Source: Phaeosaccion multiseriatum (taxonomy: Eukaryota; Protista; Ochrophyta, other classes). Taken from it: a stretch of DNA of 64,000 nt. Shown one piece after another: positions 15,670 to 63,475 of the stretch (positions within the stretch are counted from its first letter, which is position 1; each line of letters begins with the position of its first letter). The notes below the pieces were generated by a model. The model was not told the DNA's origin. It did not search any database and saw only the letters and a list, made by a program, of their open reading frames with translations. The translations under genes were made by a program, and so were the position numbers. The stretch spans positions 2,294,001-2,358,000 of the forward strand of contig OZ218963.1 in assembly GCA_965112735.1 (NCBI GenBank), read 5' to 3'.

Positions 15670-16086
15670 TGTTACGATATAAGGCATCCCAATATGCCTT
15701 CAGTATTATCCAAACGGGGCGTTTGGATAATACTGAAGGCATATTGGGATGCCTTATATCGTAACAAAAGAGGGGTTCGAGTCCTACCTGAGGAAAGAGG
15801 AAAAAATAATATGATGTTACCCGAGGGGGGTTCCCAAGGAGATACCAGAGGGTCGTACCCTGTTGAAAAAAGCACGTGAAAACTGGTGGGATAAACAAAG
15901 GGACAGTATTTAGGGACGAACGTGTCGGTAGCGCCAACCCCCCGGTGCGAAGGTGTAGGGCTCAAGGAACCCACCTTTTGTTACGATATAAGGCATCCCA
16001 ATATGCCTTCAGTATTATCCAAACCAATTTTTATTAATTGGTTTGGATAATACTGAAGGCATATTGGGATGCCTTATATCGTAACA
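15670..16086. mobile_element. Element M: 417-bp non-coding element with hairpin termini
   Basis: Palindromes 15670-15766 (47-bp arms, loop GGG) and 15979-16086 (51-bp arms, loop TTTATT); TG..CA ends; TSD GCCTT. Confidence 0.9.
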
Positions 16087-16739: not shown

Positions 16740-16940
16740 CGGCTCTGGTTGCTGCTCTGCCTCTCCCGGCTCTGCACGCTCTGGTTGCTGCTCTACCGCT
16801 CCCGGCTCTGCACGCTCTGGTTGTTGCTCTACCGCTCCCGGCTTTGCACGCTCTGGTTGCTGCTCTGCCGCTCCCGGCTCTGCACGCTCTGGTTGTTGCT
16901 CTGCCGCTCCCGGCTTTGCACGCTCTGGTTGTTGCTGTTC
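16740..16940 (-). repeat. 36-bp tandem repeat encoding AEQQPERAEPGA-like units
   Basis: About 5-6 units; homologous array in element D at 28956-29110. Confidence 0.85.
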
Positions 16941-29200: not shown

Positions 29201-30161
29201 CCCTTCTTCTTCCGGCTCCGGCATACCATTTTCTCGTATGCCCAGCCCAAGACTACTAACGTAGCCTTCGATGTGGGACGCACCCTCATCACCGGGACAG
29301 GTCTCACGTGTGTCAGAAGACACATCCGTTCCACCATCCGCCCCCACTGTTTGGACATAAGAATTGTCCTGTGCCGCATCTTCTGCCGTGGGCACTCTCT
29401 CGTCATCCGACAGAATGTCTAAGGCGCCTTGCATGCCAATAAAGGCGCGCAGATCGGCCTTGTACTGCCAGAACTCTACTAACGTAGAGCCCTCTTTCAG
29501 CTCAGAAGAAAAGGTTTGCACTTTTGACTTGTAGCTCAAACAAATCAGAGAACCGCTGCTACCGCTGCTGCCCCCATCCACGCTGTTTCCCCTTTCCTCT
29601 ACCGTGCCGCCAATACCTGACGCACTTTCTTGGCTTTCGGCTGCTAACGCAACAGAACCGCCTGCTTCGGAACTTGTGCCCAACTGGGCTTCCATCATCT
29701 GCATAAGCCTTGCAATCTGCTGCTCCTGCTTCTGCACTGTGCGAAGCAATACCTGAGAATCTAACGATTCGCTGCTTGCTCCTTGACTAGAGGTTACATC
29801 AACCTCTTCGTCATCGTCCCCTTTCTGCTCTGTCGTGCTAGCATGTCCCCCAGACATGGGTACCGCAAGACAGGACTACGCCTTCTTCTGTTGAATTACA
29901 CTCACTTCGTTTTCTGCTGTCGCCGAACAAATAAATTGCAGAACCAGCTAGCTGTGAAGATGTTCGCGACAATTGTCGTGTTGCGATGTCTCTCTGCGCA
30001 AGTAGATACGTAAGCTCTTGTGCGTGTCAACTAATGTATTGTTCTTAACAGAACGCCATAAAAGTAGTACAGGGCCAAAGCCCCATGAGCCGAAGATCCC
30101 AGTGACGCATGTAACCAATATTGGGCATCCCACAGACCCCAATAAAGATCATATCACAACA
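26277..30161 (-). mobile_element. Element D: Ty1/copia deletion derivative retaining RT-RNase H but lacking PR and IN
   Basis: 183-bp LTRs 26277-26459 and 29979-30161, TSD CCAGG, PPT at 26460-26467; RT LYGLHQSPR, YADD; RH YADANWA; gag N-terminus in ORF 28307-29857. Confidence 0.92.
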
Positions 30162-30166
30162 CCAGG

Positions 30167-31283
30167 CGGCTTCGGGTCGGCTCGGCTGCAGCACGTGGAG
30201 CAGATGCGGCAATGTGGCTGGGCTCCAGTGACCCTGTCCCACATCAACGAGAAGAAACGGGTGATAGAGGAGTGGTCTCAGCTGCCGCTGTTTCTCAGCC
30301 ACGTGCCAGCAGCGCGGTGCACGTACATACGCACGGAGGAGCAGGTGTGGGACATGCGAGCGGCACTGCGGGAGGCGACAGTGGTGGCCATGGACTCGGA
30401 GTGGGCTATACGCACTCCTCCTCGGCCGGCGTCTCTGCTGCAATTGGGTGTTCAGTATAGCGGCGTCGCCAATTCGGAGCGTGATTGTGGGTTCTGGGTG
30501 GATTTGGACAGTTTGAGTGGCAATGGTGGTATGGAGGCGCTGGCGGCGGTGCTGAGTGAGCTGTGGGGCGACGGGGGGATTATGAAGCTGGCGCATCACT
30601 GGAGTCACGACCAGCGTGCCCTAGGGAAGTGGCCGGCGTTGGCGCCGCATGTGTGGACCATCGCCAACTTGGTCGACACGACGCATTTATTCAAGGAGGT
30701 GTGGCCTGAGCACTGCCGTCCCATTGGCTTAGCAGACCTGGTTAGTATGTTCCTGCAGCGTTTTATGAGCAAGGAGGAGCAGAAGACGGATTGGACTCAG
30801 CGGGAGCTCACTGCGGCCCAGCTCAGCTATGCCTTCGACGATGTGGCCGCATTACTACAGTTGTTGCCGAAGATGCGGGCTTGTGCAGTTCCGGTGCCGT
30901 CTGCGATGGAAGTGAGCGCGGTGGATAGCGGGGGGGCGGGTGTGACGCGTGCTGAGATGCGCGCAGGACAGTTCGTCTCTGCCGGGGTGGGGTATTGGGC
31001 CGATCGGGAGCACGCCAGTCCGCTCTTCATTTTCTCAGCGACCGCTAAGTCAGTGGAGATGATCGACCTGATCCTTCTTTCTTACCGACATCCCCAGTGG
31101 ACCTGGACGGAGCTCATGGACGCAGTGGAGCAGTTCAGGGCGCGCTATCGGCCGGCCGCGGCGCGGAGGCGTGGCAAGCTGTCACTACCTCGAGCGGTTA
31201 TGATTGAGAAGACGTGGAGTGCCATCGCCGCAGATACGGGCGGCTTCTACACCATGGTGACCCCCACAGAGGCCCAGCAGTAG
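30167..31283 (+). CDS. DEDDy 3'-5' exonuclease domain (RNase D/WRN/Mut-7-like) within element B pol
   Basis: ExoI VAMDSEW, LLQLG, ExoII HHWSHD, GLADLV, ExoIII TDWTQRELTAAQLSYAFDD; in frame with RNase H across the element D TSD. Confidence 0.85.
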
Positions 31284-32221: not shown

Positions 32222-33684
32222 TGTGGAGTCGTGCACTGAAAGGATGACTACCAATAGCAATAGACCCTACCTGCACATAGCAGGAGGTCAGTCGCTATCC
32301 ACCAGAGGTGGAACACTCGTGAGAAAACGAAAGGACGAGAGATGAAGTAATATTTTAGGAGATGGAAAGAACTAAAAGGAAACTGAAACTGAACGAAGAA
32401 ACTGAAACTATGAACTGACGACATTTGTGAGCATACCTCCACAGTCCCCCCTTTGAAAGCATGTGTGCATACGCAGACATGATAAGGAAAGAGAAAGAGA
32501 TGAACACAAATAGGAGGAAAGGAAGTAAGGAAAAGAGGGAAATCCACACAGACTGGCTACACCGACTTGGGAACAGAACAGATGGAGGGAAAAGCTGCCT
32601 CACACAAGGGGGAGGGAAAAAGCGGCCACACAAACAGTCCAGAAACACCAGAGAGTAGAGAGAATTAGCCCTAGCTACACCGACTTGGGAACAGAACAGA
32701 TGGAGGGAAAAGCTGCCTCACACAAGGGGGAGGGAAAAAGCGGCCTCACAAACAGTCTAGAAACACCAGAGGGTAGGGAGAATTATTTCAGGGCACATTG
32801 GTACTCAGAAGGTATAGGAAAGAGTCCGAGGGAAACAGAAGAAGATTAGAAGTGAGGAGAGTAACGGTCACGGAGAAAGGTGACAGTACGTTCCGACGCC
32901 TGACGGGGAGGGCCGGTGGCGCCGTCTTTGATGTGCTGCGTCGCTGCTGCCTTACCAAGGGCCTCTTGGATATTAATGCCGAGCTCCTTCAGGGTGGCGC
33001 GGCCCACGGTAACCAACTTGGTCATGTCGTTATCCGTGATGGCATAGCTGATCTTGGGCACCAAGAGAGGGCCCTGGAAGGTGTGAAGAATGAGGTCCAA
33101 AGGTGGAGTACGCCGCTTGTAGGAAAACATGTTGGGGCTTGAGGCCGGCAGCGAGGCCTCCGCTGATTGCAGAAGCTGTGCCTTCTACCCATTCGTCCGC
33201 ACTCTCGTTGTAGACCACGGCGAGCTGCCCACATTTATCCAGCGCCGAAAAGAGCTGCACAATCTGCTGCTGGCATCGATCCACTGCGGCCGCTCTCTGA
33301 CTGGGATCGGCCAAAAAAGGCTGGATGTAGACCTCGATGCTGGAAGAGCCTACCGCGGGTGGTGTACAGCCTACCACCGGGTGTTGTAGTGGCGAGACGG
33401 ACATTGGTCGCCGCTGAAATTGGAAAGTGTATGAAATGTACTATCCGGTAATAACTAGTTATTGTGGAGTCGTGCACTGAAAGGATGACTACCAATAGCA
33501 ATAGACCCTACCTGCACATAGCAGGAGGTCAGTCGCTATCCACCAGAGGTGGAACACTCGTGAGAAAACGAAAGGACGAGAGATGAAGTAATATTTTAGG
33601 AGATGGAAAGAACTAAAAGGAAACTGAAACTGAACGAAGAAACTGAATCTATGAACTGACGACATTTGTGAGCATACCTCCACA
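32222..33684 (-). mobile_element. Element G1: 1463-bp non-autonomous LTR element (gypsy deletion derivative)
   Basis: 222-bp LTRs 32222-32443 and 33463-33684, TSD GTGC, PPT at 32444-32455, protease-tail-like remnant TVGRATLKELGINI. Confidence 0.92.
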
Positions 33685-33969: not shown

Positions 33970-34694
33970 TGTTAGAAGTCGTACTTTTGCTAGACTGATA
34001 CCTCCCGGTCTGAATTCAGAGGGCAGGTATCAGTCTAGCAAAAGTACGACTTCTAACAAGGCTAGTTGTGAGTTCGAACCTTAGCTGTCGCTTGTGAAAA
34101 AGCGTATTTTTCGGCGAAAACTGTTACCAGCTTGCTGGCCCATGATGCTGATTCTCAGACTGCGAGTTACTTCTCTCCACTATGTGCGGTGGGGGGGGGG
34201 GGGTTCGTCTTCTAGCAACGGTCTTGTTAGAAGTCGTACTTTTGCTAGACTGATACCTCCCGGTCTGAATTCAGAGGGCAGGTATCAGTCTAGCAAAAGT
34301 ACGACTTCTAACATCTCCACTATGTGCGGTGGGGGGGGGGGTTCGTCTTCTAGCAACGGTCTTGCTAGAAGTCGTACTTTTGCTAGACTAATACCTCCCG
34401 GTCTGAATTCAGAGGGCAGGTATCAATACGACTTCTAACAAGGCTAGTTGTGAGTTCGAACCTTAGCTGTCGCTTGTGAAAAAGCGTATTTTTCGGCGAA
34501 AACTGTTACCAGCTTGCTGGCCCATGATGCTGATTCTCAGACTGCGAGTTACTTCTCTCCACTATGTGCGGTGGGGGGGGGGGGTTCGTCTTCTAGCAAC
34601 GGTCTTGTTAGAAGTCGTACTTTTGCTAGACTGATACCTACCCTCTGAATTCAGACCGGGAGGTACCAGTCTAGCAAAAGTACGACTTCTAACA
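33970..34694. mobile_element. Element K1: concatemer of the hairpin-terminal family K (four hairpins)
   Basis: Hairpins 33970-34058, 34225-34313, 34362-34440 (partly deleted), 34606-34694; single TSD CAAG. Confidence 0.9.
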
Positions 34695-35458
34695 CAAGCC
34701 AATGGGCAAGTGGAGCGCTTCATGGCCACGATGAAGGACATGCTGGCGACGACAGTGGAGGCCCAGATGCAGCAGTGGCCTGAGTATGTGTAAAGAGTCA
34801 CGTTGCTCTCCACCTAGGATAGGAGTAGCCGCATGGATAAGGTAATAGCAACCCCAAAGCCAGCCTGGCAGCCAGCCTTGTCTCTATTAGCTTTATCCGT
34901 GAGCCATCCTAAACGACCAACCTGCTGGGAGGTGAGTGAGAAACGGGCCACGCACCGTTTCTCACCGTATTTGCCTGGGCCTGGGCCATTGACATAATAC
35001 TGACTTTCAACATCCCCGTCAGCCATCCCTGCACTTCTAACATCCCCCTGCACTAAACTATTGCGTGTCCCCACGCAACTCAAAGCGGGTTCGCCTACTA
35101 AGCTAAGCTCGACTTGTAGCAAAAGCCTCCATGTTGCTTCCAATAAAAACGGATGAGAAATATGCAAAACTCACCCAGGTGTGTGCGACCGCTCCTCCAA
35201 CACACACCCTCCTGTATTGGTGAGAAAACCCCACGACTCAAACTCACCCACACAGGCTCACGGATGAGAACATGTTGGGATATCTCCCTCCTGGAGACTG
35301 GTGTCGTACTTGCACGAGTGTGGGAAAGCGTCTTATTAGCTACATAACACTAAAAGAAGAAGTGAACGGACTTGTACCAGCGATATGAGATCGATATCTA
35401 GTGTCGACATCGATTTATCTCAACACACCTCCTCGCCTGGTACTGTCCATTCCGCTAA

Positions 35459-37096
35459 CTACGCCCTAAAACCCATCATCTTTTCACGTAAAGCTACAAG
35501 TACTGCCGGGGTCACATGCTTCGTCAAAAGGTCAGCCAGCTGCGCCTTCGAAGCCACGTACTCAAATGCAATAAGAGCCTCCTTCACTGCGTCTTGCAGA
35601 AAATGAAACCGAACATCAATGTGCTTCATCCTCCGTGTCGATGCATTGCTCTCTGCCAGCTTGATACACCCCATGTTGTCCTCAAAAACAACTGTCGCCT
35701 TCGACGAGTCATCAGGGAACAAGAAACTCAATACCTGCCTAATGTATAATATTTCCTTCACACAGTCACTGGCTGCCATGTACTCGCTCTCCAGCGAAGA
35801 CATCGCCACACTCAGCTGCAATCGCACACCCCAAGTGATAGCTGCACCTCCGTACATCAAAGCATAACCAATCGAACTCCTGCGAGTGTCAACACATGCA
35901 GCGTAATTCGCGTCTGCATATGCTTCCAAAACACACTCGCCCTTGCCAAACACCAAAGCACGATCCACAGTACCCTTCAGGTAGCCAAACACACGCATAG
36001 CCTGCTTCCAATGCTCAGGGCCGGGGTTCTTCATATACCGCGACAACTCTCGAACAGCATAGGCAATATCAGGCCTTGTCCAGTTTGAGATCCACATCAA
36101 AACGCCCACCACACCGGGGTAGTCCTTGTCAGTCATAAAAGCTACATCAGCTGCAGACGATGGCTCCATACTCTTGCTGAGTGCTGTGCCAGACACACCG
36201 GGTGTCGAGTAAACTCGATCAGACTCCAAACCAAACTTCACTATCATCTTCTTGATGTAGTGCTCCAATGTCAATGTGACAGTGCCTACGCTCCGGTTGA
36301 ACACAACGCGCACTCCCAAAAACTGATCAACATTGGGCCCAAGTCTCTTCAACGAAAACTTGTTGTCCAGCTCTGTAAAGAGCCAGTCCACCACCTCCTG
36401 CTTTCCTCCGCAGGACAAATCATCAACAAATACAATGAGGATGCCAACAAGCTCCCCATTCTTCCACAAAACAAATAAACACGGCTCAGCGCCGCACTGT
36501 TGCCATCCAAGCTCAAGCAGAAACTTCACCAATGTCTGATACCAACGTCTCGGTGCCTGATGTAGACCATAGAGTGCCATCAGCAAGCGCATGACCTTGC
36601 CCTTCCGCAGAAAACCCGGAGGCGGTAACACATACACCACCTCATGCTCTTGCAGAGGCGCATGCAGAAAAGCTTGATCCACATCAGCAAACTCACACAC
36701 AAAACCAGACGTCTTCATCTTGTCAACCACCACAGCGAAGAACAAACGAACCACGGGCGCCGCAATCACTGGAGCAAAGCAATCAGAGAAATCAATTCCC
36801 TCCGTCTGAGTATGACCGCCAACCACCAAACGAGCCTTCAACTTGGTAACATTGTCGAGATGATCACTCTTCACCTTATAAACAAAGTGAGAGCGTACTG
36901 GTCGCACATCCAAAGGCTGATCCACCACTTCCCAAGAATTTCTTGCTTCAAGCCCCCCCCACTCACTCAGCATAGCCGCTGCCCACTCATCAGAAAACTT
37001 TCCAGTCAGAGCCTCATGCCGATTCTTTGGGGTAGGTACCTCAGACACCTTCGTACCTGGAGCTAACGACAGTAGCGCGTGCAAAGCCGCTGAATG
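35459..37096 (-). CDS. Element E reverse transcriptase-RNase H, in frame behind a TGA
   Basis: KARLVVGG, LYGLHQAPR, FVDD, YADANYA, EDNMGCI, KHIDVRFHF. Confidence 0.93.
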   Translation of the reverse strand, partial: HSAALHALLSLAPGTKVSEVPTPKNRHEALTGKFSDEWAAAMLSEWGGLEARNSWEVVDQPLDVRPVRSHFVYKVKSDHLDNVTKLKARLVVGGHTQTEGIDFSDCFAPVIAAPVVRLFFAVVVDKMKTSGFVCEFADVDQAFLHAPLQEHEVVYVLPPPGFLRKGKVMRLLMALYGLHQAPRRWYQTLVKFLLELGWQQCGAEPCLFVLWKNGELVGILIVFVDDLSCGGKQEVVDWLFTELDNKFSLKRLGPNVDQFLGVRVVFNRSVGTVTLTLEHYIKKMIVKFGLESDRVYSTPGVSGTALSKSMEPSSAADVAFMTDKDYPGVVGVLMWISNWTRPDIAYAVRELSRYMKNPGPEHWKQAMRVFGYLKGTVDRALVFGKGECVLEAYADANYAACVDTRRSSIGYALMYGGAAITWGVRLQLSVAMSSLESEYMAASDCVKEILYIRQVLSFLFPDDSSKATVVFEDNMGCIKLAESNASTRRMKHIDVRFHFLQDAVKEALIAFEYVASKAQLADLLTKHVTPAVLVALREKMMGFRA

Positions 37097-40000
37097 TCAG
37101 GTGTCACTCTTCTGCTGTGGTTTGGTCGAGCGTCGCGAGTGTCCACGACCGTACCCGCCAGATGACAAACTCTCCCAAAACACCTCCTTGTGGCCATGTT
37201 CCTGATCAGTCCAATCCCAACCAGGACGAGGCGCTGCGCTTTTCTCCTGCTGCTGGTGCTGAACGGATCCTTTGTCTTTGAGCTGCTGCTGTTGCTCTTT
37301 CTTCTGCTGCTGCTGCGTCACCTCCAAAGAGCTGCGCTGATGTCCTTGCTGCTGCTGAGTCTGCAACACACGCTGCTGTGCGTCTGGAAGACGCTCTCCA
37401 GTTTGCTCATGATCCCCCTCGTCCAAATCCAGCGCAGAAAAATCGAACAGATCGAATTTTGACACCGCGATTTCCGAATCCTCGATTTCCGTAACGTCTT
37501 TCTCCAAAGGGAACTCCGACGACGGCGCGGGCTCTTTCAGAGCAAAATTGGTCTCGCTGAAAAGCTGTCCATCGATCCCACGACGCTCAGGGAGTAGCCG
37601 AAAACTGCGACTGAGGATAACGCGCTCCGTCTTCGGATCGAAAAAGACCAGGCAGTCAATCGGATGATACTTGCTCCTCCCAAGGTAGATCACAGCTCTG
37701 CCACGCCCAGACTCGTAGTGCTTGATCGTGTGGGTGGGGCGCTGCTCCTTGATATAGGCCAGACAGCCGTACGGAGCGATGTTGCTGCAGTCCGGAGCAT
37801 GACCAGTGAGCACCTCATACCGTGACGGTTCGCCCCGCTTGCCGTTCAAGTTCAAAAACATAGAGGCATATCGAGCCCCAAAACACCACAGTTTCGGAAA
37901 CGCCTGATCCAAACCCGCCGCGTCAGAGACCACTGCTGCCTTCTGAGCCAGTGTGGCCAGTCTCTTCTCTATAGCTCCATTCTGCTCCGGGGTATAGGGA
38001 GAGGTGAACTTCCAATGAACGCCCTTGCTGGTCACAAAGGTAGCTGCCTGCTCCTGATTCAGCAGCTCGTTGCCGTTGTCAACTAGCAACTCCTCAAGCT
38101 GTGCACCAGTAGGCACTACCACCTCCGCCCAAAAACGCTGCAAGGCAAGGATGAAATGGCTCTTTTTCGTGGTAAAGTACACCCAGCCAACCTTGGAGGC
38201 CATATCCTGGAAGCCAAACACCCACTTGTACCCCCCATATGCCTCAAAACTCACCGGTTGGGCATCTGCTGCCACTACACGTAGCCCATCCGTTGGATCG
38301 ACAGGTCGAAGGGCCCGAGACACGTTGGCTCGGCGAGCATTGTTCCGCAGGCACGGCTCACACGAGCGCAGAGTCCCAGTGAGGTGAATGCCACGCTGCT
38401 TCGCTGTAAAGCGCAAATCTTGCTCAGCCTGGTGCCCGTTGGTGATATGGAACTGGTTGATGTCCTCCTTCGGTAACGCACGATGCCGCACACAGCCCAA
38501 CACATTGACCTGCATGAGCTCATCCTGACTGGCAATCACAGCAAGAGGGTCGTCTGGAGAGGACCCAAAGACCAGCTGATCGTTCTCATCATCTCCGTGT
38601 ACACCTCCCAAAGCCTGCTGCAAGTCGCTGAGCCGCAGCAAGTTGAACTTGGCCTGAGGGGCCACAACCACATCAATGCGCACCAGCCGCCGACCGCCGT
38701 TGCGGTCCTTCATCTCGAGCAGCAGCTCCCCGCGGGCAGTGACAGTGACATACCCTTCACCCGCAGTAGCTCGCATCTCGTTGATCCGCTCGATGTTTTG
38801 CACAGCCGTCATGTCGCTCGTAAGGTTACACGACGCTCCACTATCCACCACCCAGGTCTCTGAAGAGCCACTCGTCGGCGGTTCGGTGACGGACAGACAA
38901 ACACCGAGGAGAGAGCCCCAATTTACCTTGGTTGCTCGAGGCTCGCCCGAAGCAGGGGTGGTCATGACGGGTGCTGCAGAAGCGTTCTTGAGGCACCCCT
39001 TCAGAGTGGAGGGACCTCCACCTTTGCCGTCGCTGGCACTCGCAGGCTGCTCCTTCTGCTCCTTCGGCGGCGGATCCTTCTTCGGCTGCTCTGTGTTCTT
39101 GGGCTTCTTCTTCTCCGCAAACTTGGGGCACTGCTCGTCCGTAGAGATGTGGTCAGAGGAGTTACACGCAAAGCAGCGACGCCCATTGGGACACTTGAAG
39201 TGGGCGTGGTCTGTCAGGCCGCATTTAAAGCAGCGGTTGTGACGTCGACCGCCGCGAGGCCGGTCACCGCCCCCGTCCTTGCCACCATTGCCTCCCCTGG
39301 GGAAGGCAAGAATAGGGAGACTCGAAGAGCCACCCGCACCACCTTGCCGAATAGCCTCAGCTGCCGCTTCCTCTGTGGTCCAGAGGTCAGCCTTAAAGTC
39401 CGTGGGGTCCGTGATCCCTATTGCCACACGTCGCCAGGTCTCCTTGAAGTGGAAGAGCACGGAAGGGAGACGCTCCAAAAAATTGACGGTGACGGCGCCG
39501 ATGGTCATGACAATGCCGTACTCCTGAAGGAGCAGGCGGTACTCCAGCATCTCCTTGTAAAGCTGGGTAGGGGGGCGCTTATCCGAGATCCGCAGCTCCA
39601 AATACTCCTTCTGAAGACGATTCGCAGTCGAAGCTTCCCCTTTTCCTACCAGACGGTCCCGGGCATGGTTGAAAATGTCCTGCAGCGTCCCTCCATTGCG
39701 GGCAACGTCCTGCAGGGCCTGTTGAACATGCTTGCTGCCAAACGACTTAATGACCTTCTGCACCACCTGAGAGAAAAGGTAGCGCACGTTACTCAGGTTG
39801 TCATCAAGTTCCGCCAGGGCGGAGGGCGGCACCAACTCAGGCTCCTCCAGCATGAACCGAAGGCCCAAACTATCGAGCTCGGTGTGCCAACCTTCTTCGT
39901 GCTTCCGAAAGGCCAAAGCGGTGGGAGCCTCTCCTCGCAGCTCAAACTTAATTGCAGCCAAGGCCGTCTGACGCAGCTGGGCCCACTTGCCATGGGTATT

Positions 40001-40735
40001 GGCGTGCATCGTCGTGAGGTCAACCAACAACGGGTCAGGAACCTCCTCACTCTCGGATGAGTCGTCATCACTGCTGTCTGATGTGCCAGCTGCGGCAGCC
40101 GCTGCAGCCGCAGAGGATGCCCTCACTCTCCCTCGAGTAGCTGTCCCGCCAGCAATCTGCACAGTCTCTTCTTCAGTATCAAGTGCTGCGTGGAGGCCTG
40201 CACCATCGGTGGCCAAGTCTGGGGACAGGGCCACGGCCTCCTCCTCTTGTTCCTCTGCAGCGTCCAGGAAGCGCTCGTCGGCATCCCTCCTTTTGGGTGC
40301 CAACGCTGCTTGCACTGCTGCAATGGACGCTTCGTCCATCTCATTCAACTGTGACAACACTGACTTCACCGTGGGTCTACTGGCCACTGCAGCAGACCTA
40401 AGTCCAGACATGGCAGGCGTAAAAGCCCTGCCACCGCTCCCGCTACGAGCAGAGGTATCCACTGCTGCTGCCCGACTGGGGGAGTTTGTTACGGGCCCCA
40501 CCTGGGCACTACGCAACCCTCGTGTATGGAGTTCCTTGTAGTCAAGGCCAGGCCGCATCCGCAAGCCATAGCCGCTGCCGGACAAAGCTGAATCAACTCG
40601 AAGCTCCTCCTGCTGCCTTCTACTCAAAACCCCCTCCTGTCTCGTGCTCTCTTGGTCGCGGAGCCACCGCTCCTTGATCGCACGACGTGCCTTCTCCCTC
40701 GAAGCTCTAGACACTCGTCGGTCCGCCATACTCAA
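37097..40735 (-). CDS. Element E gag-protease-integrase polyprotein
   Basis: Zinc knuckles CFKCGLTDHAHFKC and CFACNSSDH, WVVDSGAS, H-H-C-C, DNGNE, YTPEQNGAIEK. Confidence 0.93.
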   Translation of the reverse strand: MSMADRRVSRASREKARRAIKERWLRDQESTRQEGVLSRRQQEELRVDSALSGSGYGLRMRPGLDYKELHTRGLRSAQVGPVTNSPSRAAAVDTSARSGSGGRAFTPAMSGLRSAAVASRPTVKSVLSQLNEMDEASIAAVQAALAPKRRDADERFLDAAEEQEEEAVALSPDLATDGAGLHAALDTEEETVQIAGGTATRGRVRASSAAAAAAAAGTSDSSDDDSSESEEVPDPLLVDLTTMHANTHGKWAQLRQTALAAIKFELRGEAPTALAFRKHEEGWHTELDSLGLRFMLEEPELVPPSALAELDDNLSNVRYLFSQVVQKVIKSFGSKHVQQALQDVARNGGTLQDIFNHARDRLVGKGEASTANRLQKEYLELRISDKRPPTQLYKEMLEYRLLLQEYGIVMTIGAVTVNFLERLPSVLFHFKETWRRVAIGITDPTDFKADLWTTEEAAAEAIRQGGAGGSSSLPILAFPRGGNGGKDGGGDRPRGGRRHNRCFKCGLTDHAHFKCPNGRRCFACNSSDHISTDEQCPKFAEKKKPKNTEQPKKDPPPKEQKEQPASASDGKGGGPSTLKGCLKNASAAPVMTTPASGEPRATKVNWGSLLGVCLSVTEPPTSGSSETWVVDSGASCNLTSDMTAVQNIERINEMRATAGEGYVTVTARGELLLEMKDRNGGRRLVRIDVVVAPQAKFNLLRLSDLQQALGGVHGDDENDQLVFGSSPDDPLAVIASQDELMQVNVLGCVRHRALPKEDINQFHITNGHQAEQDLRFTAKQRGIHLTGTLRSCEPCLRNNARRANVSRALRPVDPTDGLRVVAADAQPVSFEAYGGYKWVFGFQDMASKVGWVYFTTKKSHFILALQRFWAEVVVPTGAQLEELLVDNGNELLNQEQAATFVTSKGVHWKFTSPYTPEQNGAIEKRLATLAQKAAVVSDAAGLDQAFPKLWCFGARYASMFLNLNGKRGEPSRYEVLTGHAPDCSNIAPYGCLAYIKEQRPTHTIKHYESGRGRAVIYLGRSKYHPIDCLVFFDPKTERVILSRSFRLLPERRGIDGQLFSETNFALKEPAPSSEFPLEKDVTEIEDSEIAVSKFDLFDFSALDLDEGDHEQTGERLPDAQQRVLQTQQQQGHQRSSLEVTQQQQKKEQQQQLKDKGSVQHQQQEKSAAPRPGWDWTDQEHGHKEVFWESLSSGGYGRGHSRRSTKPQQKSDT

Positions 40736-41193
40736 TGCAGCGTGGCAGACGCACCAGTGCTAAGATCTACTCCGACCGTTTCAGCTCTCCGAACTCATCC
40801 CGTACTTTACGTTCACCTCTGCACTAATGCGCATTAGATTTCAACCGACAATTGTCGTGTTGGGATATCTCCCTCCTGGAGACTGGTGTCGTACTTGCAC
40901 GAGTGTGGGAAAGCGTCTTATTAGCTACATAACACTAAAAGAAGAAGTGAACGGACTTGTACCAGCGATATGAGATCGATATCTAGTGTCGACATCGATT
41001 TATCTCAACAGAACATCCCATGACTCAAACTCACCCGCGCAATTCTCTATCTCCACTCCTACTCGCCACCAGCGTTGCCAAAGCCGCGTTGCGCACCACT
41101 AATGCTGACTGCTCAAGTGTTTACTGGTGTGCCTACAAGGCACCCAGACAGTCCCTAAAGCAGCCTTGCGAGTATCCTTCTCTGTCTCCCGCC

Positions 41194-41840
41194 AAGCTCC
41201 GTGCAACAGCAACAGCCGCGCTGCTGCCACACTCGAAAGCCGTGCCCGCTGTAGGGCACCGCTCTCGGCAATTCTCTATCTCCACGGCCCACCAAGCTCC
41301 AGCAGCAATTTCCGTGCAACAGCAACATCCGTGCTGCTGCCACACTCGAAAGCCATGCCCGCTGTCTAAGGCACCACTCCCGGCAATTCTCTGTCTCCAC
41401 GGCCCACCAAGCTCCAGCAGCAATTTCCGTGCAACAGCAACATCCGTGCTGCTGCCACACTCGAAAGCCGTGCCCGCTGTAAGGCACCGCTCCCGGCAAT
41501 TCTCTATCTCCACGGCCCACCAAGCTCCAGCAGCAATTTCCGTGTAACAGCAACATCCGTGCTGCTGCCACACTCGAAAGCCATGCCCGCTGTAAGGCAC
41601 CGCTCCCGGCAATTCTCCATCTCCACTGCCCACCAAGCTCCAGCAGCAATTTCCGTGTAACAGCAACATCCGTGCTGCTGCCATACTCGAAAGCCATGCC
41701 CGCTGTAAGGCACCGCTCCCGGCAATTCTCCATCTCCACTGCCCACCAAGCTCCAGCAGCAATTTCCGTGCAACAGCAACATGTGTGCTGCTGCCACACT
41801 CGAAAGCCATGCCCGCTGTCTAAGGCACCACTCCCGGCAA
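41194..41840. repeat. Tandem array of about 5.7 units of 113-115 bp inside element H
   Basis: G(C/T)AACAGCAAC recurs at 41203, 41316, 41431, 41544, 41657, 41770. Confidence 0.9.
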
Positions 41841-42247
41841 ACTCAAAGCTACCGAGCTGCTGCCTGAGCCTCTTGGCCAAGGTCAGCTGCCTTCGGGATT
41901 CTTTGGGGTTGTAAAGAGTCACGTTGCTCTCCACCTAGGATAGGAGTAGCCGCATGGATAAGGTAATAGCAACCCCAAAGCCAGCCTGGCAGCCAGCCTT
42001 GTCTCTATTAGCTTTATCCGTGAGCCATCCTAAACGACCAACCTGCTGGGAGGTGAGTGAGAAACGGGCCACGCACCGTTTCTCACCGTATTTGCCTGGG
42101 CCTGGGCCATTGACATAATACTGACTTTCAACATATGTTCCCGCGCTCACGTACGCGTACAACTGCAGAGCTCACAAGACCACAGGCCTCTCCCCGTACT
42201 ACACTCTCTTCGGTCGACACCCCCCGATTCCACTTCAAGCGATGCTG

Positions 42248-42594
42248 TGTTAGAAGTCGTGCTTTTGCTAGACTGGTACCTACCCTCTGAATTCAGACCG
42301 GGAGGGTACCAGTCTAGCAAAAGCACGACTTCTAACAAGCCCATTGCTAGAAGTCGAACCCCCCCCCCCCACCGCACATAGTGGAGAGAAGTAACTCGCA
42401 GTCTGGGAATCAGACTAATGGGTGCAAGCCGGTACCAGTTTTCGCCGAAAAACACACTTTTTTCACAAGCTACAGCCAGGGTTCGAACTCGCAATGGGCT
42501 TGTTAGAAGTCGTGCTTTTGCTAGACTGTACCTACCCTCTGAATATTTTTATTCAGAGGGTAGGTACAGTCTAGCAAAAGCACGACTTCTAACA
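42248..42594. mobile_element. Element K2: unit-length hairpin-terminal element (347 bp)
   Basis: Hairpins 42248-42337 and 42501-42594, TSD GCTG; internal region inverted relative to K1. Confidence 0.92.
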
Positions 42595-43594
42595 GCTGCC
42601 TGCCCTCGAGGAGGACGGCTCGTTCGAGACGCCTTCGGCATGGGTGCACGAGCTGAGGGCGCGGATGGCAGCGGCGGCGCAGGTGGTGACGGGCAGGCGC
42701 GAGGAGTATCGCAGCAGGCTACAGCTCAAGAACCGTGAGCGTCGCTGGCCAGCGCCGATGCCTCCTGGCACTAAGGTGTGGTTGTACCGTCCAGGGGGGG
42801 CGGCGCAGGAGGAGGGTGAGGCCATGGAGGAGCAGAAGGCACTGACGCTCAAGGCGCTGAGTCATGCTTGGGACGGACCGTTCCAAGTCCTGGCTTGGCC
42901 CACACAGCAGGCCTTCCAGGCGCGACATGGTGGCATACTCAACGACGAGCACTACGCGGTGATGCGCCGTAGCACGGTGTATCTGGATGTGCCGAGGGTC
43001 AGAGGCGGGGGAGTGGAGTTCAAGCAAGGGGCGTACCATAGGGACCTCACCAAGCCGTTCGTTGATGGGGTGAGTGGCCAGCCGGAAGGACTACCAGATG
43101 GGTTCGCTCGATACCACATCCGGTACTGCTCAGCCCACTGGGGTACTAGTGCACTGCAGGAGAAGCGTAGCGTGACCGATGACGAGGTTGGGATAGGGCG
43201 GGCGCCCGAGCTGGTGCGGATAGTGAAGATGAGGTGGCGTAAGGCCACAGGGCAGCCCCTACGGCGTGAGTACTGTGTCCGTTGGGCTGTACGGGAGGGT
43301 GGCAGTTATCAGACGTGGGAGTGGGACGATTGGCTCTTGCGGCGCGGGGAGAGGGCGGCAATAGAGGCATTCGAGGACTCTTTGGCGCCAGGGGCGTTGG
43401 ACCCGAGCGTGCAGCGCAAGCGTGGGCAGCGGTCTAAACGAGAGCGCACCGTGCGCGCCATGTTGCACGAGAAGTGGGGGATGGGCATCGCTGCGGAGAC
43501 GGCGCAACATTTGGGGTTCTAGACCTTGCGGTGGTGGTGGTCGCAGAGACGGGATAGGCATTGGGGATGTTGGAAGGTTACGGGATAGGCATTG

Positions 43595-49844: not shown

Positions 49845-51097
49845 CATGGCGGTGTTTATCTGCACGCGAGGATGAGCGTCGGTGACTAGTAGAACCTTCT
49901 GGTGAGTAGGTATCTACGACTGTAGCTGTGGGCGTGTGCTAGAGGTGTTGGTTGTTCTCTGGGTATTGGGGTTGCGGGATTTATCTTTCATATAAACGGC
50001 CTTGGGTTGGCTGGACATGTTTTCTTTTCATATAAACGACTGAGTGTGTCGGACTTGTTTGCTTTCATATATTTAGAATGTCAGTGACGTATTGAGCCTT
50101 TGATTGGTTGCCTCCACACAGAGTGTCTCGGCAAGGGGGGATCTGTGGTGGAGGTGGGACAGGCTCAATTACGTATTATTAGGTATGCAGAGTAGGAAAG
50201 GAAGCGGGACGCGGCCTTTTTGAGAGCCTGGTTGGCCCCTCCGCACTCCTGAACCCGTATAGACCAAGTGGATAGCTCTCCTTTAAACAAGGAGGCTGTC
50301 CAGGGTCTTAGGGTGGGATAGTCCTTATTATCAATACACTTGGTGCTAGCATTGGTATCTTCTCCCCATATTGGGACCGGAACGCAGCGCTCAGCTTGGG
50401 GGTACCTTCTTACTCTTAGGCAGAGGAAGGTAGCGGCCCCACAAGACTATGGCTTGAGGACGGGAAGAGAGGTAAAAAGAGGGCAGAGCCCCGCTCCCCC
50501 CTCGATCATTTGCTCTCAGTCAAGGATCTTTTGTTGTCGGAAAGGGGAAGGGGAAGGTGGATTAGGAAGGCATGGCTGGAGAACGGAGCATTAGGAGGAG
50601 CAGGGCTGGCCCTTTCTCGTGTGTGCTGTCTGGGTCTAGGTCGATATCGATACTTGCCCGGGGTTAAAATAGGGCTATGTCAGTATTGGTGTCAGGACCC
50701 TTTTCTAGATTGGTCCTTTGGACTTCCACTTTCTTTCTTTTGTTCAACAAGGTACCTTGCTCGAGCTACAAGATTATAATAGAGGAGGCTTCACACATCG
50801 GGCACAGAGCCAGTGGAGTATTCTCTAAACCCCTTGTAGAGCTTGTGGGCACAGCATAGTTTAAACTTAGCTTTAGTAGAGGAAGAAAAGCTTGGAGCGG
50901 GTGTCAAGCAGTGCGGAGCTGTAGCCAAGCTCTTAGGTGAGATGCTAGCGCTCAGTACTCGAAGGAGAGCCGGCAAGCGTCCTGTGCGGACTCGCCGAGG
51001 AGGCTGGAGAACGCAGGCGGTGCGCTAGCGCTCACCGGAGAGGCAAGTAAATCATGGCGGAAGCGGAGGCTCGTAATCGGGTTGCGGACGTAATTGT

Positions 51098-51703: not shown

Positions 51704-51837
51704 CGCGGCAACGGTGTATGTTAGAAGTGGCCTAGGCTAGTTGGGGTCCCTTGGGGACCCAAGCAGTAGAAGCAGTAGAAGTGAACGGCCGCGGAAACTG
51801 GCCAATACGGTAAATCGGTAAATCAGCGCTTGGGCTG

Positions 51838-51882
51838 TGTTAGAAGTCGTACTTTTGCTAGACTGATACCTGCCCTCTGAAT
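51838..51882. repeat. Half hairpin of family K, broken at the palindrome centre
   Basis: TGTTAGAAGTCGTACTTTTGCTAGACTGATACCTGCCCTCTGAAT then unrelated sequence. Confidence 0.8.
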
Positions 51883-53540
51883 AAACAGCTGGCTTCCGGG
51901 TGCTTGTTGGCTTCTGCTTAGCTTCTGCTTGGCTTCCAGTCTAGCTGTCGGTAGTTTCGACAACCCGGAAGATCCGAAAGACACTGAGGCTGACAACCGG
52001 GAGATAAAGACATTTATGTGTGGCCGGAGGCTTGCTTTCCGCTGTCAGCTGTAAGTTTTTAACAGCTTTGCGACCGGGAGCTGCCTATGGCGGAGGATGG
52101 GACGGATCTACTGCACCTTGCTGCTGAGGGAGACAGTTTTTCTAATGCTGCTGTTCCCTCTGCCTGCTGCCGCGGCCGTCACCGCCAGTCCCGGTGCGGT
52201 GGACTGGTTGAAGCAGCGCGTAGCGGCATTCTGCGTGGATGGGAGCGACTACGGCCGCACAGATTCGGGCCGGTTTGGTTTTCCGTTGTTGGACCCGAAG
52301 CAGCCGCCCATTCGGAGTGCGGCACGGCGCTACCCTCCTCTCCGGTACGCCGCGGTATTGAGATTGAGTTGAACAAGATGTTAGCAGCAGAGATCATCAG
52401 GCCCAGCACAGCAGCCTGGGCCACTCCTCTCATGGCCGTGCTGAAGACGGACGAGCACGGCAACACCAAGTGTCACGAGGACGGCACTCCGATAGTGCGG
52501 ATGACGTGTGACCTGTCGCAGCTCAATGACGCGTGCCGTACGGAGGCGCCCGCCATGCCAGTGGTGGATGATTTGCTGGCGGAGATGCAGGGGTCTACGG
52601 TCTTTTCGGTGATGGACATCATGTCAGGTTACTTCAACGTGCCTATGGCCACTAAGGAGGACGAGGACGACATCTCTACCTTTGTCTGTCACAGTGGCAC
52701 GTACGCCTGGAGGGTTATGCCACAAGGCGCGAAGAATGCTCCAGCCACGTTCGTACGACTTATGAACACGGTTTTGCAGGGCCTACAGGCGTTTGTGGCG
52801 TGCTTCGTGGATGACATTGCGGTCTTCTCCGCCACGGTGGATCAGCACATCGGCCGGTTAGACCAAGTCCTCGGCAGGATGGTGCAGCACAAGCTCAAGC
52901 TGGCGCCGAGCAAGGTGGTACTGGGGGCACCGCAGGTGCGCTTCTGCGGGCATTTGGTGGATAGTGAGGGGGTGGGGGCCGATCCAGCCAAGTATGCAGC
53001 AGTTCGAGCGCTGGCCAAGCCCACCGCGCAGCCGGGCAATCAGGTGCGACAGGTCAGGCGCTTTGTAGGCATGCTCAGCTACTTCCGCAAATTCATTCCG
53101 GAGTTTGCCATGAAGGTGCGGCCGCTCAATGAGCTCTTGCGCAAAGGGGTGGATGTGCGGGCAGCATGGGGGCCGAAGCACGACGCGGCGTGGGAGGGGC
53201 TCATCGAGGACCTGCTACGCTCTCCAGCATTGGCCTTCCCTCATTACGGCTCGGAATCGGTGTTCACGCTCAGCACTGACGCTTCAGCAGAAGGCTTAGG
53301 GGGTGTGCTGTCGCAGCGGGATGCCGAGGGGGTGGAGCGAGTCGTGACGTTCATCAGTCGTGCCACTACCCCTACGGAGGCGCGGCTCGGCAGTACGGAG
53401 CTCGAGCTCTTGGCGGTGGTTTGGTGTGTGCGCAAATTGAGCATGTACATTTGCCACCATCCCTGCACGGTGGTGACGGACCACCAACCCTTGCTGTGGC
53501 TGGCGACGCACAAAGACACCAACTCAAAGCTATTTCGGTG

Positions 53541-56500
53541 TGTGGAAAGTCGTGCTTAGACCTCCACGAAACGGACTAGACACACAGATAAGGTAGCAGC
53601 ACCCCAAAGCTAGCCTGACAGCCGGCCTTGTATCTATTAGCTTATCTATGCACTGTCCTAAACGACCACCTACAGGAGGATAGTGAGAAACGGGCACCGT
53701 TTCTCACTGCGTTGCCTAGGCCTGGGCCACTGACATACGACTGACTTTCCACATCCCCGTCAGCCATCCCTGCACTTCTAACACTCCCCTGACAAGACTG
53801 TTGCGTGTCCCCACGCAACTCAAGCGTTTTCACCTACTGAAACTACACTGTAGCAAACCCCTTTATGCTGCTTCCAAAAAAACCGGATGAGAAATATGCA
53901 AAACTCACCCACCAGTGTGTGACGTGGCACTCCACAGGTCACCCTGCCACACACCTGCCACGGCAGGGTGAGAAAGCCCAAGGCCTCAAACTCACCCTCC
54001 GTGGCTGCGCACGGCTGCGCTAGCGCTGGCTCGTCCCCACCGTCACCTGCTGTCCCAGCGTTGCAACCGTACGAGGCACTCCATGCGCGGCCTGCTCCGT
54101 CGCCAGCAGCTGGGCCGCCTTCTCGTCCATCAGCTTCTGCAGCCGCGCCTGCGCCGCTTCCACTTGCTGCATCCGATCCTTCAGAGAGAGAGGAGGCCGG
54201 TCCAACCAGGCCGGACGATCCGCTGCAATCTCCTGCTGCCACCGGCGCTGCCTTGCCGGATCACACTTCATCGCGTCCATCTCCTGCTGCCACTGGCGCT
54301 CCTCCTCAAGCTGCCGCTCTGCCGGATCCCTGACCCCGTCGGGCCTTACCTTGCGCTTCTTCGACCGCCGCCCCCTCCTCTTTGGCCGCGCACCAACTTC
54401 GGTAGTGGAACCAAGACCACTGAGAACGCCATTCACCCGCACTACAGGCTGAGCCACAGCCCGCAGTGCGTCCTCCCGCTCTTGCCAGTCCCGCACTTGC
54501 TGTACCCGCGTGCTCTCCGCTTGAGCCTGCGTGTGTACCTCTTGCAGCTTGCGCTGAGCTTCCTCAGCCAAGGCAGCTTGTTGCGCCTGCTGCCGTCTCT
54601 CTTTCTCCCCGACGCGGCGCCTCTCCACCCGCTCCTGAGCCGCACACACACGCGCCCGCTCCAACTGTTCCTCCTCCAGCCAAACAGACTCGCGCTCCTG
54701 CCGCTCCCGCTCGAGGACCGCAGCAGACACTGACCCCTCTGCAAGCGTGACGCCAGCCTGCTCTACCTGCTCCTCCTGAGCCTGCGCTTGCGCCACCCGA
54801 AGCCGAGACTGCGCCGCGGCCGCCACCGTCAGCTCTAGCGTCTGCAACTCCTTCGAGGCTCTGCGCTGTGCTGCCTGCCCTGTCGTCGTCACGGCCTTCA
54901 CCAGCTGAGCAAGGACGCGCTTGTATTGCTCAGTGCGCTGCACAAGCGTCACCACCACCTGGGAAGCTGTACCCAAGCCGTACCGCTTCCCTGCATCCAC
55001 CATCTTCCTCACCATGGCTCCGGTGGTCGGTTCGGTAGGGCAGCGAGAGAGACAGTGCTCCTTCTTGCAGTGAAAGCACGAAAAGACTTGCCCTGCCCCA
55101 CAGTCGACCTTAGATCGTTTCTGCTTGCTGCCCGACCCCACCTGTGCAGCAGCTACCTGCACCTCCGACTGCTGCCTTGGATCCCGACCCAATAGCTGGC
55201 CCAGTAGCACCGGAAGTTGTGGAGTCGTGCACTGAAAGGATGACTACCAATAGCAATAGACCCTACCTGCACATAGCAGGAGGTCAGTCGCTATCCACCA
55301 GAGGTGGAGCACTCGTGAGAAAACGAAAGGACGAGAGATGAAGTAATATTTTAGGAGATGGAAAGAACTAAAAGGAAACTGAAACTGAACGAAGAAACTG
55401 AAACTATGAACTGACGACATTTGTGAGCATACCTCCACAGTCCCCCCTTTGAAAGCATGTGTGCATACGCAGACATGATAAGGAAAGAGAAAGAGATGAA
55501 CACAAATAGGAGGAAAGGAAGTAAGGAAAAGAGGGAAATCCACACAGACTGGCTACACCGACTTGGGAACAGAACAGATGGAGGGAAAAGCTGCCTCACA
55601 CAAGGGGGAGGGAAAAAGCGGCCACACAAACAGTCCAGAAACACCAGAGAGTAGAGAGAATTAGCCCTAGCTACACCGACTTGGGAACAGAACAGATGGA
55701 GGGAAACGCTGCCTCACACAAGGGGGAGGGAAAAAGCGGCCTCACAAACAGTCTAGAAACACCAGAGGGTAGGGAGAATTATTTCAGGGCACATTGGTAC
55801 TCAGAAGGTATAGGAAAGAGTCCGAGGGAAACAGAAGAAGATTAGAAGTGAGGAGAGTAACGGTCACGGAGAAAGGTGACAGTACGTTCCGACGCCTGAC
55901 GCGGAGGGCCGGTGGCGCCGTCTTTGATGTGCTGCGTCGCTGCTGCCTTACCAAGGGCCTCTTGGATATTAATGCCGAGCTCCTTCAGGGTGGCGCGGCC
56001 CACGGTAACCAACTTGGTCATGTCGTTATCCGTGATGGCATAGCTGATCTTGGGCACCAAGAGAGGGCCCTGGAAGGTGTGAAGAATGAGGTCCAAAGGT
56101 GGAGTACGCCGCTTGTAGGAAAACATGTTGGGGCTTGAGGCCGGCAGCGAGGCCTCCGCTGATTGCAGAAGCTGTGCCTTCTACCCATTCGTCCGCACTC
56201 TCGTTGTAGACCACGGCGAGCTGCCCACATTTATCCAGCGCCGAAAAGAGCTGCACAATCTGCTGCTGGCATCGATCCACTGCGGCCGCTCTCTGACTGG
56301 GATCGGCCAAAAAAGGCTGGATGTAGACCTCGATGCTGGAAGAGCCTACCGCGGGTGGTGTACAGCCTACCACCGGGTGTTGTAGTGGCGAGACGGACAT
56401 TGGTCGCCGCTGAAATTGGAAAGTGTATGAAATGTACTATCCGGTAATAACTAGTTATTGTGGAGTCGTGCACTGAAAGGATGACTACCAATAGCAATAG

Positions 56501-57900
56501 ACCCTACCTGCACATAGCAGGAGGTCAGTCGCTATCCACCAGAGGTGGAGCACTCGTGAGAAAACGAAAGGACGAGAGATGAAGTAATATTTTAGGAGAT
56601 GGAAAGAACTAAAAGGAAACTGAAACTGAACGAAGAAACTGAAACTATGAACTGACGACATTTGTGAGCATACCTCCACAAAGTGCGGCAAGGTCCATCC
56701 TGATTCCATGCAGCTCCTCCATCAACCGATTGACCATGTCGTGATCCCCCATCGGTTCCTCCTGGGACCAGCCAGTACGCTTACTCTGTGCCAGCCGATC
56801 GCCGCGCCATGCCGGCATCTTCCCTCTTGCTGCGCCCCTGCAGCTGCTCCCTCCGAGCGTGCCTAATTATGCCTGATATCCGTGCCTGCTGCTGCTGCTG
56901 CCTCTGCAGCTGCTGCGGTATCCAACACCTGCTGCTGCGCCCCCTGCCTCTCCAGCCAAGCCTGCTGTATCTCCTGCCGCTAACCTCTAGATCAGCGGTC
57001 CCCTCTGATTAAGTATAGCGGATACCCGTGCCTCCTGCTGCTGCCCCTGCAGCTGCTGTATCCAATCCTTTGCTGCTGCCCCTGCAGCTGCTCGCCAATC
57101 CTTCCGTGCCTCCTGCTGCTGCCCCTGCAGCTGCTCCTTGCAATATCCCTAGCTACCTCTTGCTGCCGATCCACGGTAGCGCTGCTGTGCCACTCTTTCA
57201 AAGCCAAGCAATAAATTCTCCCACAAATAAATTCTCCCACCGGTTCCCAAGCAAAGCCAAGCCAAGCAAAGCTAATTAAGCTAAACGCCCCTGACGGAGC
57301 AAGCTGTGGCGTGTCCGTGCCTTGGACACTAACCAAAAACGTCCACGTGCTAGTCTAGCGCACGATGAACTCAAAGTCTCCCTCTGCTGAGCCTATTGGT
57401 CAAGTGCCAAACTGTCTTCGAGCTTTGGGGTTGTGGAAAGTCGTGCTTAGACCTCCACGAAACGGACTAGACACACAGATAAGGTAGCAGCACCCCAAAG
57501 CTAGCCTGACAGCCGGCCTTGTATCTATTAGCTTATCTATGCACTGTCCTAAACGACCACCTACAGGAGGATAGTGAGAAACGGGCACCGTTTCTCACTG
57601 CGTTGCCTAGGCCTGGGCCACTGACATACGACTGACTTTCCACATCCCCATCGGCCATCCCTGCACTTCTAACACTGACTTTGGGGTTGTGGAAAGTCGT
57701 GCTTAGACCTCCACGAAACGGACTAGACACACAGATAAGGTAGCAGCACCCCAAAGCTAGCCTGACAGCCGGCCTTGTATCTATTAGCTTATCTATGCAC
57801 TGTCCTAAACGACCACCTACAGGAGGATAGTGAGAAACGGGCACCGTTTCTCACTGCGTTGCCTAGGCCTGGGCCACTGACATACGACTGACTTTCCACA
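53541..57900 (-). mobile_element. Element I: non-autonomous three-LTR element with gag-like ORF
   Basis: 213-bp LTRs 53541-53753, 57432-57644, 57688-57900; TSD GGTG; ORF 54020-55210 with CFHCKKEHCLSRC knuckle and coiled coil. Confidence 0.9.
55218..56680 (-). mobile_element. Element G2: second copy of the 1463-bp non-autonomous element
   Basis: LTRs 55218-55439 and 56459-56680, TSD AAGT, nearly identical to G1. Confidence 0.92.
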
Positions 57901-61570: not shown

Positions 61571-61661
61571 TGTTAGGAGTCGTGCTTTTGCTAGACTGAT
61601 ACCTACCCTCTGAATATTCAGACCGGGAGGTGTCAGTATAGGAAAAGAACGACTTCTAAGA
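61571..61661. repeat. Degenerate solo K hairpin
   Basis: Left arm near consensus, centre TCTGAATATTCAGA, right arm mutated. Confidence 0.75.
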
Positions 61662-61677
61662 AGGTTGATTGTGAGAA

Positions 61678-61876: not shown

Positions 61877-62189
61877 TGTTAGCGGTCTGAATTCAGAGGG
61901 CAGGTATCAGTCTAGCAAAAGTACGACTTCTAACAAGGCTAGTTGTGAGTTCGAACCTTAGCTGTCGCTTGTGAAAAAGCGTATTTTTCGGCGAAAACTG
62001 TTACCAGCTTGCTGGCCCATGATGCTGATTCTCAGACTGCGAGTTACTTCTCTCCACTATGTGCGGTGGGGGGGGGGGGTTCGTCTTCTAGCAACGGTCT
62101 TGTTAGAAGTCGTGCTTTTGCTAGACTGGTACCTCCCGGTCTGAATTCAGAGGGTAGGTACCAGTCTAGCAAAAGCACGACTTCTAACA
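61877..62189. mobile_element. Element K3: hairpin-terminal element with partly deleted left arm
   Basis: TGTTAG start, full internal region, right hairpin 62101-62189, TSD GTAG. Confidence 0.85.
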
Positions 62190-63154: not shown

Positions 63155-63475
63155 TGTTAGAAGTCGTACTTTTGCTAGACTGGTACCTACCCTCTGAATT
63201 CAGACCGGGAGGTACCAGTCTAGCAAAAATACGACTTCTAGCAAGCCCATTGCTAGAAGTCGAACCCCCCCCCCCCACCGCACGTAGTGGAGAGCAGTAA
63301 CTCGCAGTCTGGGAATCAGACTAATGGGTCAGCAAGCCAGCAAGCCGGTACCAGTTTTCGCCGAAAAATACGCTTTTTTCACAAGCGACAGCCAGGATTC
63401 GAGCTCGCAATTGCCTTGTTAGAAGTCGTACTTTTGCTAGACTGGTACCTACCCTCTGAATTCAGACCGGGAGGT
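63155..63475. mobile_element. Element K4: hairpin-terminal element, right hairpin truncated
   Basis: Hairpin 63155-63243, internal region as in K2, partial hairpin from 63417. Confidence 0.8.

Follow-up and report, generated by a model that had tools for sequence, protein, structure and literature searches.

The hairpin at positions 42501-42594 of the window, by which we mean the whole 64-kb stretch of DNA analysed, raises the question of whether one arm of a terminal palindrome in a mobile element was copied from the other. Its two arms (42501-42545 and 42550-42594) are 45 nt each, are 100% complementary to one another and are separated by a 4-nt turn, in agreement with the initial annotation, which had described the structure as fully symmetric. 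The hairpin forms terminal repeat H1 in one copy (copy b) of a non-coding unit of 347 bp, here called K, in which a 163-bp spacer is held between two hairpins and which has TG..CA ends and 4-bp target duplications. Self-comparison of the window recovers the same plan as a repeated block of ~345 bp that carries no genes and consists of a hairpin, a spacer of ~163 bp and a second hairpin; every K hairpin begins with TGTTAG and ends with CTAACA. Chance is ruled out as the source of the K arm motif, with 19 matches where 0 are expected. The sample of 13 hairpins, 11 from K and 2 from a second element, M, comes entirely from this one window, and the coordinates of the features are collected in Table 1.

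Table 1. Positions of the K copies, their parts and element M in the window.
Feature	Coordinates	Strand	Remarks
Terminal repeat H1 of K copy b (the hairpin in question)	42501..42594	.	Perfect palindrome
K copy b, whole unit	42248..42594	-	347 bp, TGTTAG..CTAACA; flanked by GCTG at 42244-42247 and 42595-42598
Partner repeat H2 of K copy b	42248..42337	.	Both usual arm types present, palindrome imperfect; one of the arms has a private extra base
Spacer of K copy b	42338..42500	-	Subfamily 2; G12 run, TTCGAAC motif
K copy a	33970..34694	+	Composite; CAAG at both flanks
K copy c	61877..62189	+	GTAG at both flanks; H1 outer arm with a 30-nt deletion; H2 arm haplotype differs from H1
K copy d	63155..63475	-	Subfamily 2; outer arm of H1 truncated
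Degenerate K fragment	61571..61677	+	Flipped hairpin with centre GAATATTC, plus spacer start
Half copy of K	51838..51887	.	One arm plus AAACA; GCTG at 51834-51837 and 51888-51891
Element M	15670..16086	+	Hairpin 15670-15766, spacer 15767-15978, hairpin 15979-16086

The mobility of K is supported by its TG..CA ends and by 4-bp target duplications at three insertions (CAAG, GCTG and GTAG). Copy b is inserted in the integrase gene of E1, an old, nested Ty3/gypsy element whose LTRs (6203-6497 and 50144-50443) are 93% alike and which has the duplication AGAC; its pol region is broken by six nested insertions, of which four lie in the integrase part, and shows at least one frameshift. Two K insertions fall in the integrase region of E1, and the left flank of copy a matches the integrase core domain, the pieces flanking the K insertions having been compared separately and none of them joined. 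Copy a has an intact first unit (33970-34313), which is followed by a 49-nt piece of spacer end and then by a decayed second unit that extends to 34694 and ends in a flipped hairpin. A single duplication flanks this whole composite, the second unit is ~6% diverged, and the flipped last hairpin has one G-T stem position. No empty paralogous site for copy c was found in the window, where related repeats stop short of the insertion point. The possibility that the hairpins bound the copia genes at 35-41 kb and 44-50 kb was also considered and was rejected, as those genes lie in separately bounded nested elements, and the nested copia elements bracketed by K hairpins have LTRs and 5-bp duplications of their own. 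The framing of the initial annotation, which had set K beside ordinary LTRs, needs correction: K and M are not gene-bearing LTR elements but miniature non-coding units nested in other elements.

The usual K hairpin is an imperfect palindrome, with an extra GG in one arm and an extra purine in the other, which produces two small bulges. This bulge pair is kept in 10 of the 11 K hairpins, which span three stem haplotypes and both spacer subfamilies. Its orientation relative to the spacer is the same in eight hairpins and flipped in two (34606 and 61571), and in one (42501) the pair is lost. The orientation is the same at both ends in three of the four informative units, and therefore the terminal repeats of K are direct, as in LTR elements and TRIMs, and not mirrored as in TIR transposons. 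The centre reads GAATTC in eight of the 11 hairpins and GAATATTC in 61571-61660, as had been annotated for GAATTC and for a variant near 61612, while the annotated A/T-expanded centre is found only in 42501.

K and M resemble miniature terminal-repeat retrotransposons (TRIMs, as defined in PMC6934838) in being non-coding and smaller than 1 kb, with terminal direct repeats round a short internal domain, and also in having TG..CA ends and 4-5-bp duplications, in lying nested within other elements and in occurring in tandem. K units measure 313-347 bp and M measures 417 bp (hairpins of 97 and 108 bp, spacer of 212 bp), and neither contains an ORF of 150 aa or longer; the asymmetry marker points the same way at both ends in three of the four K units, and K has the duplications CAAG, GCTG and GTAG, whereas M has GCCTT. 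An uninterrupted paralogous empty site in a related copia element at about 28655 confirms the 5-bp duplication of M. Both elements differ from TRIMs in that a near-perfect palindrome makes up the terminal repeat, whose 89-108 bp lie at or below the usual TRIM range of 100-250 bp, and in that the spacer ends prolong this palindrome, as inverted repeats of about 13-25 nt in K copy b. No TGG-type tRNA primer site adjoins either repeat, tRNAs having been searched in the window, and no polypurine tract adjoining a repeat was recognised, the G12 run of K lying 24 nt from H2 and a 17-nt purine run of M lying near H1 only. Reverse transcription of K therefore stays putative, and we counted this against what is the best explanation of the element, namely that K is a miniature, non-coding, integrase-inserted element of TRIM type in which each terminal repeat is an 89-94-bp near-palindrome of LTR-end sequence. 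As for other origins of the spacers of K and M, ARAGORN found no tRNA gene in the window, and searches of Rfam gave no tRNA or ribozyme match even at E up to 10, the only hits below threshold being generic hairpin matches to microRNA models. The spacers match nothing else in the window.

Ginger DNA transposons share TGTNR termini with gypsy LTRs, make 4-bp duplications and have terminal repeats that measure 40-270 bp, and they target CCGG or CCGT (Ginger1) or RTATAY (Ginger2) (PMC2836005). K shares the TGTNR tip and the 4-bp duplications with Ginger elements and their non-autonomous derivatives; however, it sits in CAAG, GCTG and GTAG, which fit neither target, and its asymmetry marker is direct rather than mirrored at the two ends in three of four units. 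No integrase gene of the Ginger-like kind, free of reverse transcriptase, was found in the window. As a single strand, K folds into a hairpin on either side of a core that the spacer ends close by pairing, and M does the same (z about -24). Parvoviruses also have terminal palindromes with small unpaired bulges in two orientations, the flip and flop hairpins, and the bulges of K likewise occur in two orientations. The K orientations, in contrast, stand at 8:2 (with one hairpin symmetric) and are concordant within units, not independent and even; K has neither a nickase gene nor coding capacity, and it is integrated, with duplications at the outer ends of its palindromes.

The hairpin at 42501-42594 departs from the usual form in several respects at once. 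Both arms lack 1 nt that is present in the partner repeat 42248-42337 and in all other copies, and a 17-mer over the deletion occurs twice in the 64-kb window, once in each arm of 42501-42594; this confirms the private 1-nt deletion that had been annotated, where private means private to these 64 kb, because all hairpins come from one window and exact-pattern scans of metagenome, viral and prokaryote genome collections found no further copy of a K or M arm. The centre contains 8 extra A/T bases relative to the GAATTC of eight other hairpins, for which the window offers no source, both arms are of the same (second, extra-purine) type, so that the usual asymmetry is lost, and there are at least five mirrored differences from the partner repeat. 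By the direct-repeat rule the outer arm should be of the GG type; it is instead the exact complement of the spacer-side arm, deletion included. The anatomy, the insertions and the mirrored private changes are direct observations, as is the identity of the arm that was overwritten. One fold-back copy explains all of the mirrored differences, which are at least five in number, and we consider it probable that the 42501 hairpin is the product of a single event of this kind, an intrastrand template switch. Under this mechanism, K repeats would normally pass on two arms that differ by the conserved bulge pair, both inherited unchanged. In copy b, synthesis would have run outward along the spacer-side arm of H1 with a slip of one base, about 8 A/T bases would then have been added at the centre, and synthesis would have turned back and copied the new strand, making the outer arm an exact mirror of the inner one. 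The spacer-side arm would have served as template and the element-outer arm would have been overwritten, in a single event at one end.

Mirrored changes could also arise with no copying of one arm from the other, if a paired stem were needed in RNA or DNA and the changes were independent compensatory mutations, or if the hairpin had been converted from an unseen K lineage. Stem covariation is seen at two K positions (A-U three times, G-C three times and G-U once), both are transitions, and the G-U intermediate in 34606-34694 is what the classic compensatory path would leave. Doubly changed cells at the covarying positions number six, against 2.4 ± 1.4 in shuffles, which with few related sequences is only suggestive; the same covariation also speaks in favour of fold-back copying. 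Exchange between copies does occur, as in copy c a subfamily-1 spacer is joined to a hairpin of another haplotype. The donor for such a conversion is absent from the window, however, and a mirrored deletion, a change of arm type and a centre extension, all absent from the partner repeat, are improbable as separate hits, which makes an origin without copying unlikely. Palindromes are also a known risk for assembly and polishing artefacts, and reads placed in either orientation on a near-palindrome could produce a symmetric consensus. Yet ten other K hairpins remain asymmetric in the same assembly, and mis-mapping would create neither the deletion nor the 8-nt insertion at the centre; we therefore regard an artefact as very improbable.

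Arm-to-arm copying of this kind has precedents. Nascent DNA at the end of a template can fold back and copy itself, and the product is a perfect hairpin whose short loop is untemplated; 42501 is likewise a perfect hairpin, with a short and putatively untemplated loop. Such self-copying of a nascent end is known as a dead-end or laboratory side reaction, and we know of no integrated element that has its product as a terminal repeat. Template switching at quasipalindromes offers a second precedent, in which an imperfect inverted repeat becomes perfect and longer, one arm templating the other with several changes per event (PMC7202029, PMC3820800, PMC13100816). In 42501 one arm is the exact complement of the other, and the clustered changes correspond to one event. 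Quasipalindrome switching is described as a host mutation at arbitrary loci, whereas in K it affects a mobile element at its functional end and may be linked to one end of the unit.

The copying may accordingly be placed after insertion, in the chromosome, through a quasipalindrome template switch or fold-back repair of a break at the centre, with no role for the cycle of the element. This account is plausible, though we do not favour it. Template switches that perfect or extend imperfect inverted repeats are well documented (PMC7202029, PMC3820800, PMC13100816) and require no assumption on the cycle of K; of the repeats in copy b only H1 has changed in this way, the unmirrored private base in 42248-42337 implies that copy b had time to mutate, and the M hairpins, otherwise unmutated, also show changes at their centres. 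A chromosomal event predicts no bias between ends, yet all four structural defects of the K hairpins (the overwritten arm, a 30-nt deletion, a truncation and an 11-nt deletion) are in H1, giving 4/6 for H1 against 0/5 for H2 (one-sided 0.045, post hoc); having been spotted after the fact, this bias is weak evidence. It would also require a prior deletion in the template arm followed by conversion, where synthesis of both arms de novo needs one slip, since a single slip in the nascent strand is mirrored automatically in the second arm.

With regard to timing, we lean slightly towards the last step of the DNA synthesis of copy b itself over later chromosomal replication or repair. In such an element-coupled setting the outer part of the H1 repeat would be among the last DNA made in an LTR-type cycle, and a palindromic template of 90 nt would be expected to fold, so that synthesis may stall at the centre, add untemplated bases and turn back. 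The concentration of all four defects at the H1 end is in agreement with this setting. An LTR-type cycle should, in contrast, produce identical ends, and those of K copy c are discordant; nor does the fold-back model explain the two flipped K hairpins.

The initial annotation had gone further and proposed snap-back as a general rule, by which each new copy would rebuild each hairpin on a short-tailed template that stops at the palindrome centre. Part of this proposal stands, namely that in 42501 one arm was templated on the other with A/T filler at the turn. In M, too, each hairpin is a perfect palindrome; its four arms are identical over 46 nt and only the private mirrored centres differ, a pattern that speaks for fold-back copying and is in keeping with the general rule as well. 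The annotated half copy does halt at the palindrome centre, its single arm at 51838 being identical at 45/45 positions to the arms 34014-34058, 34269-34313 and 61891-61935, and the extra bases of three K centres share the same opening; both are in keeping with the general rule. Routine rebuilding would, however, erase the arm asymmetry, and this asymmetry is the same in 10 of 11 K hairpins across three haplotype groups and two spacer subfamilies, the centre being identical in eight of 11; the hairpin is therefore not rebuilt in each cycle. The two hairpins in the first unit of copy a (33970-34313) are identical to each other and yet internally asymmetric. Identity between arms and between ends divides the K units evenly: in 42248-42594 and 61877-62189 the arms within a hairpin agree and the ends differ, while in 33970-34313 and 63155-63475 the likeness from end to end equals or exceeds that from arm to arm, so that the annotated preference for arm-to-arm identity holds in two of four units. 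Unit 61877-62189 is the one for which differing ends and covarying arms had been reported, and there the ends indeed differ at 3 of 44 arm positions, with matching changes in both arms of 62101-62189. General snap-back rebuilding is thus highly improbable, and fold-back at K ends would be an occasional accident rather than the routine route of end formation.

The initial annotation had also placed the filler of 42501 in the right loop of M. The string ATTTTTATT is indeed present at the centres of both the 42501 hairpin and the right hairpin of M, and these are its two occurrences in 64 kb, against 0.07 expected; because 3 of its 9 bases in K belong to the native arm, the inserted filler that K and M share is only 7 A/T bases, and this could be coincidence. 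Comparison of the K and M spacers revealed only a weak common motif, with a score equalled by 31 of 2000 shuffles. The subfamily-2 spacer of K (42400-42445, minus strand) and the spacer of M (15855-15890) both contain TGAAAAAAG and GAAAACTGGT in the same order, a weak hint that the pair may be a common functional motif.

The opening 17 bases of the K arm agree at 14 positions with the LTR tip in a resident family that makes 4-bp duplications (57432 onward), and the opening 11 bases of M agree at 10 with the LTR tip in resident copia elements, which make 5-bp duplications. Given these tip matches and the lengths of the duplications, K and M therefore each have the end that a different integrase recognises. 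Self-priming LTR elements of the Tf1 type have, beside the 5' repeat, a site complementary to the bases with which the transcript begins; a 12-nt near-copy of the bases that open the repeat lies 7 nt inside the spacer. In the LTR family A2 (57423-57900 and 53540-53753), two LTR copies that are 100% identical stand in tandem with only 34 bp between them, and these 34 bp join the leader start to a G-rich tract; to judge from this layout, the arrangement would represent an extreme internal deletion or a tandem LTR array.

A limited literature search for palindromic LTRs or terminal palindromes in retrotransposons found no such element described. A bolder reading, which we advance as a doubtful one, is that K and M belong to a class of miniature retroelement not described so far, marked by palindromic terminal repeats, one end of which could be finished through turn-back synthesis where the template stops at the palindrome centre, and that these two unrelated families would parasitise gypsy-like and copia-like integrases. 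If so, one arm with an integrase-compatible tip would suffice to regenerate a full element end. The parallel between K and M, two families unrelated in sequence that share one design and of which each agrees in termini and duplication length with a separate resident LTR superfamily, suggests a general route from a bare integrase recognition end to a mobile miniature element. In LTR-type elements the replication cycle is generally considered to keep the terminal repeats at the two ends alike. As the K repeat is itself palindromic, it displays a second axis of homogenisation, from arm to arm, at the resolution of single events. Arm type, centre filler and end identity are natural markers, by which element-coupled synthesis errors could be told from chromosomal palindrome instability by census alone.

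The surrounding sequence shows further features. E1 (6203-50443) encodes a DNA_pol_A_exo1 domain, resembling the 3'-5' exonuclease of RNase D, at about 30320-30880 (Pfam, 5e-16), between RNase H and the integrase zinc finger; the other gypsy element of the window (17957-23735) is without it, and we know of no exonuclease domain in gypsy pol. Weak PDB matches to this domain are 9qrf and 9f7g. Five nested LTR elements have LTR pairs that are 100% identical (17957-23735, 14840-24171, 26277-30162, 35273-41010 and 34789-42134), which against the 93% of their host E1 indicates that an old element has very recently received a burst of insertions. Long, degenerate tandem or low-complexity repeats that are 75-85% alike (10939-14500) are found within the gag/protease part of E1.

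Several LTR families have a perfect palindrome of 10-12 nt directly inside the 5' LTR in the sense of the element, with cores CTAG or CAATTG/CAGCTG (18193-18202, 33451-33462, 23972-23983, 29966-29977 and 40846-40857), in the position expected for the tRNA primer site. These palindromes recall the 'conserved hairpin site' of fungal GalEa copia elements (PMC5445492), and one K copy has GCAATTGC 2 nt inside H1. Apparent host genes are present as long uninterrupted ORFs at 1053-3245, 58602-59504 and 60068-61126 (PP2C phosphatase, Methyltransf_22 and nucleotide-sugar transporter). The protein collection contained no close relatives of these host proteins, exact look-ups of two proteins from the window found neither recorded, and word searches with the copia polyprotein, the gypsy RT and the sugar transporter gave nothing closer than 41% identity. 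The long intronless host ORFs would suggest an intron-poor eukaryote.
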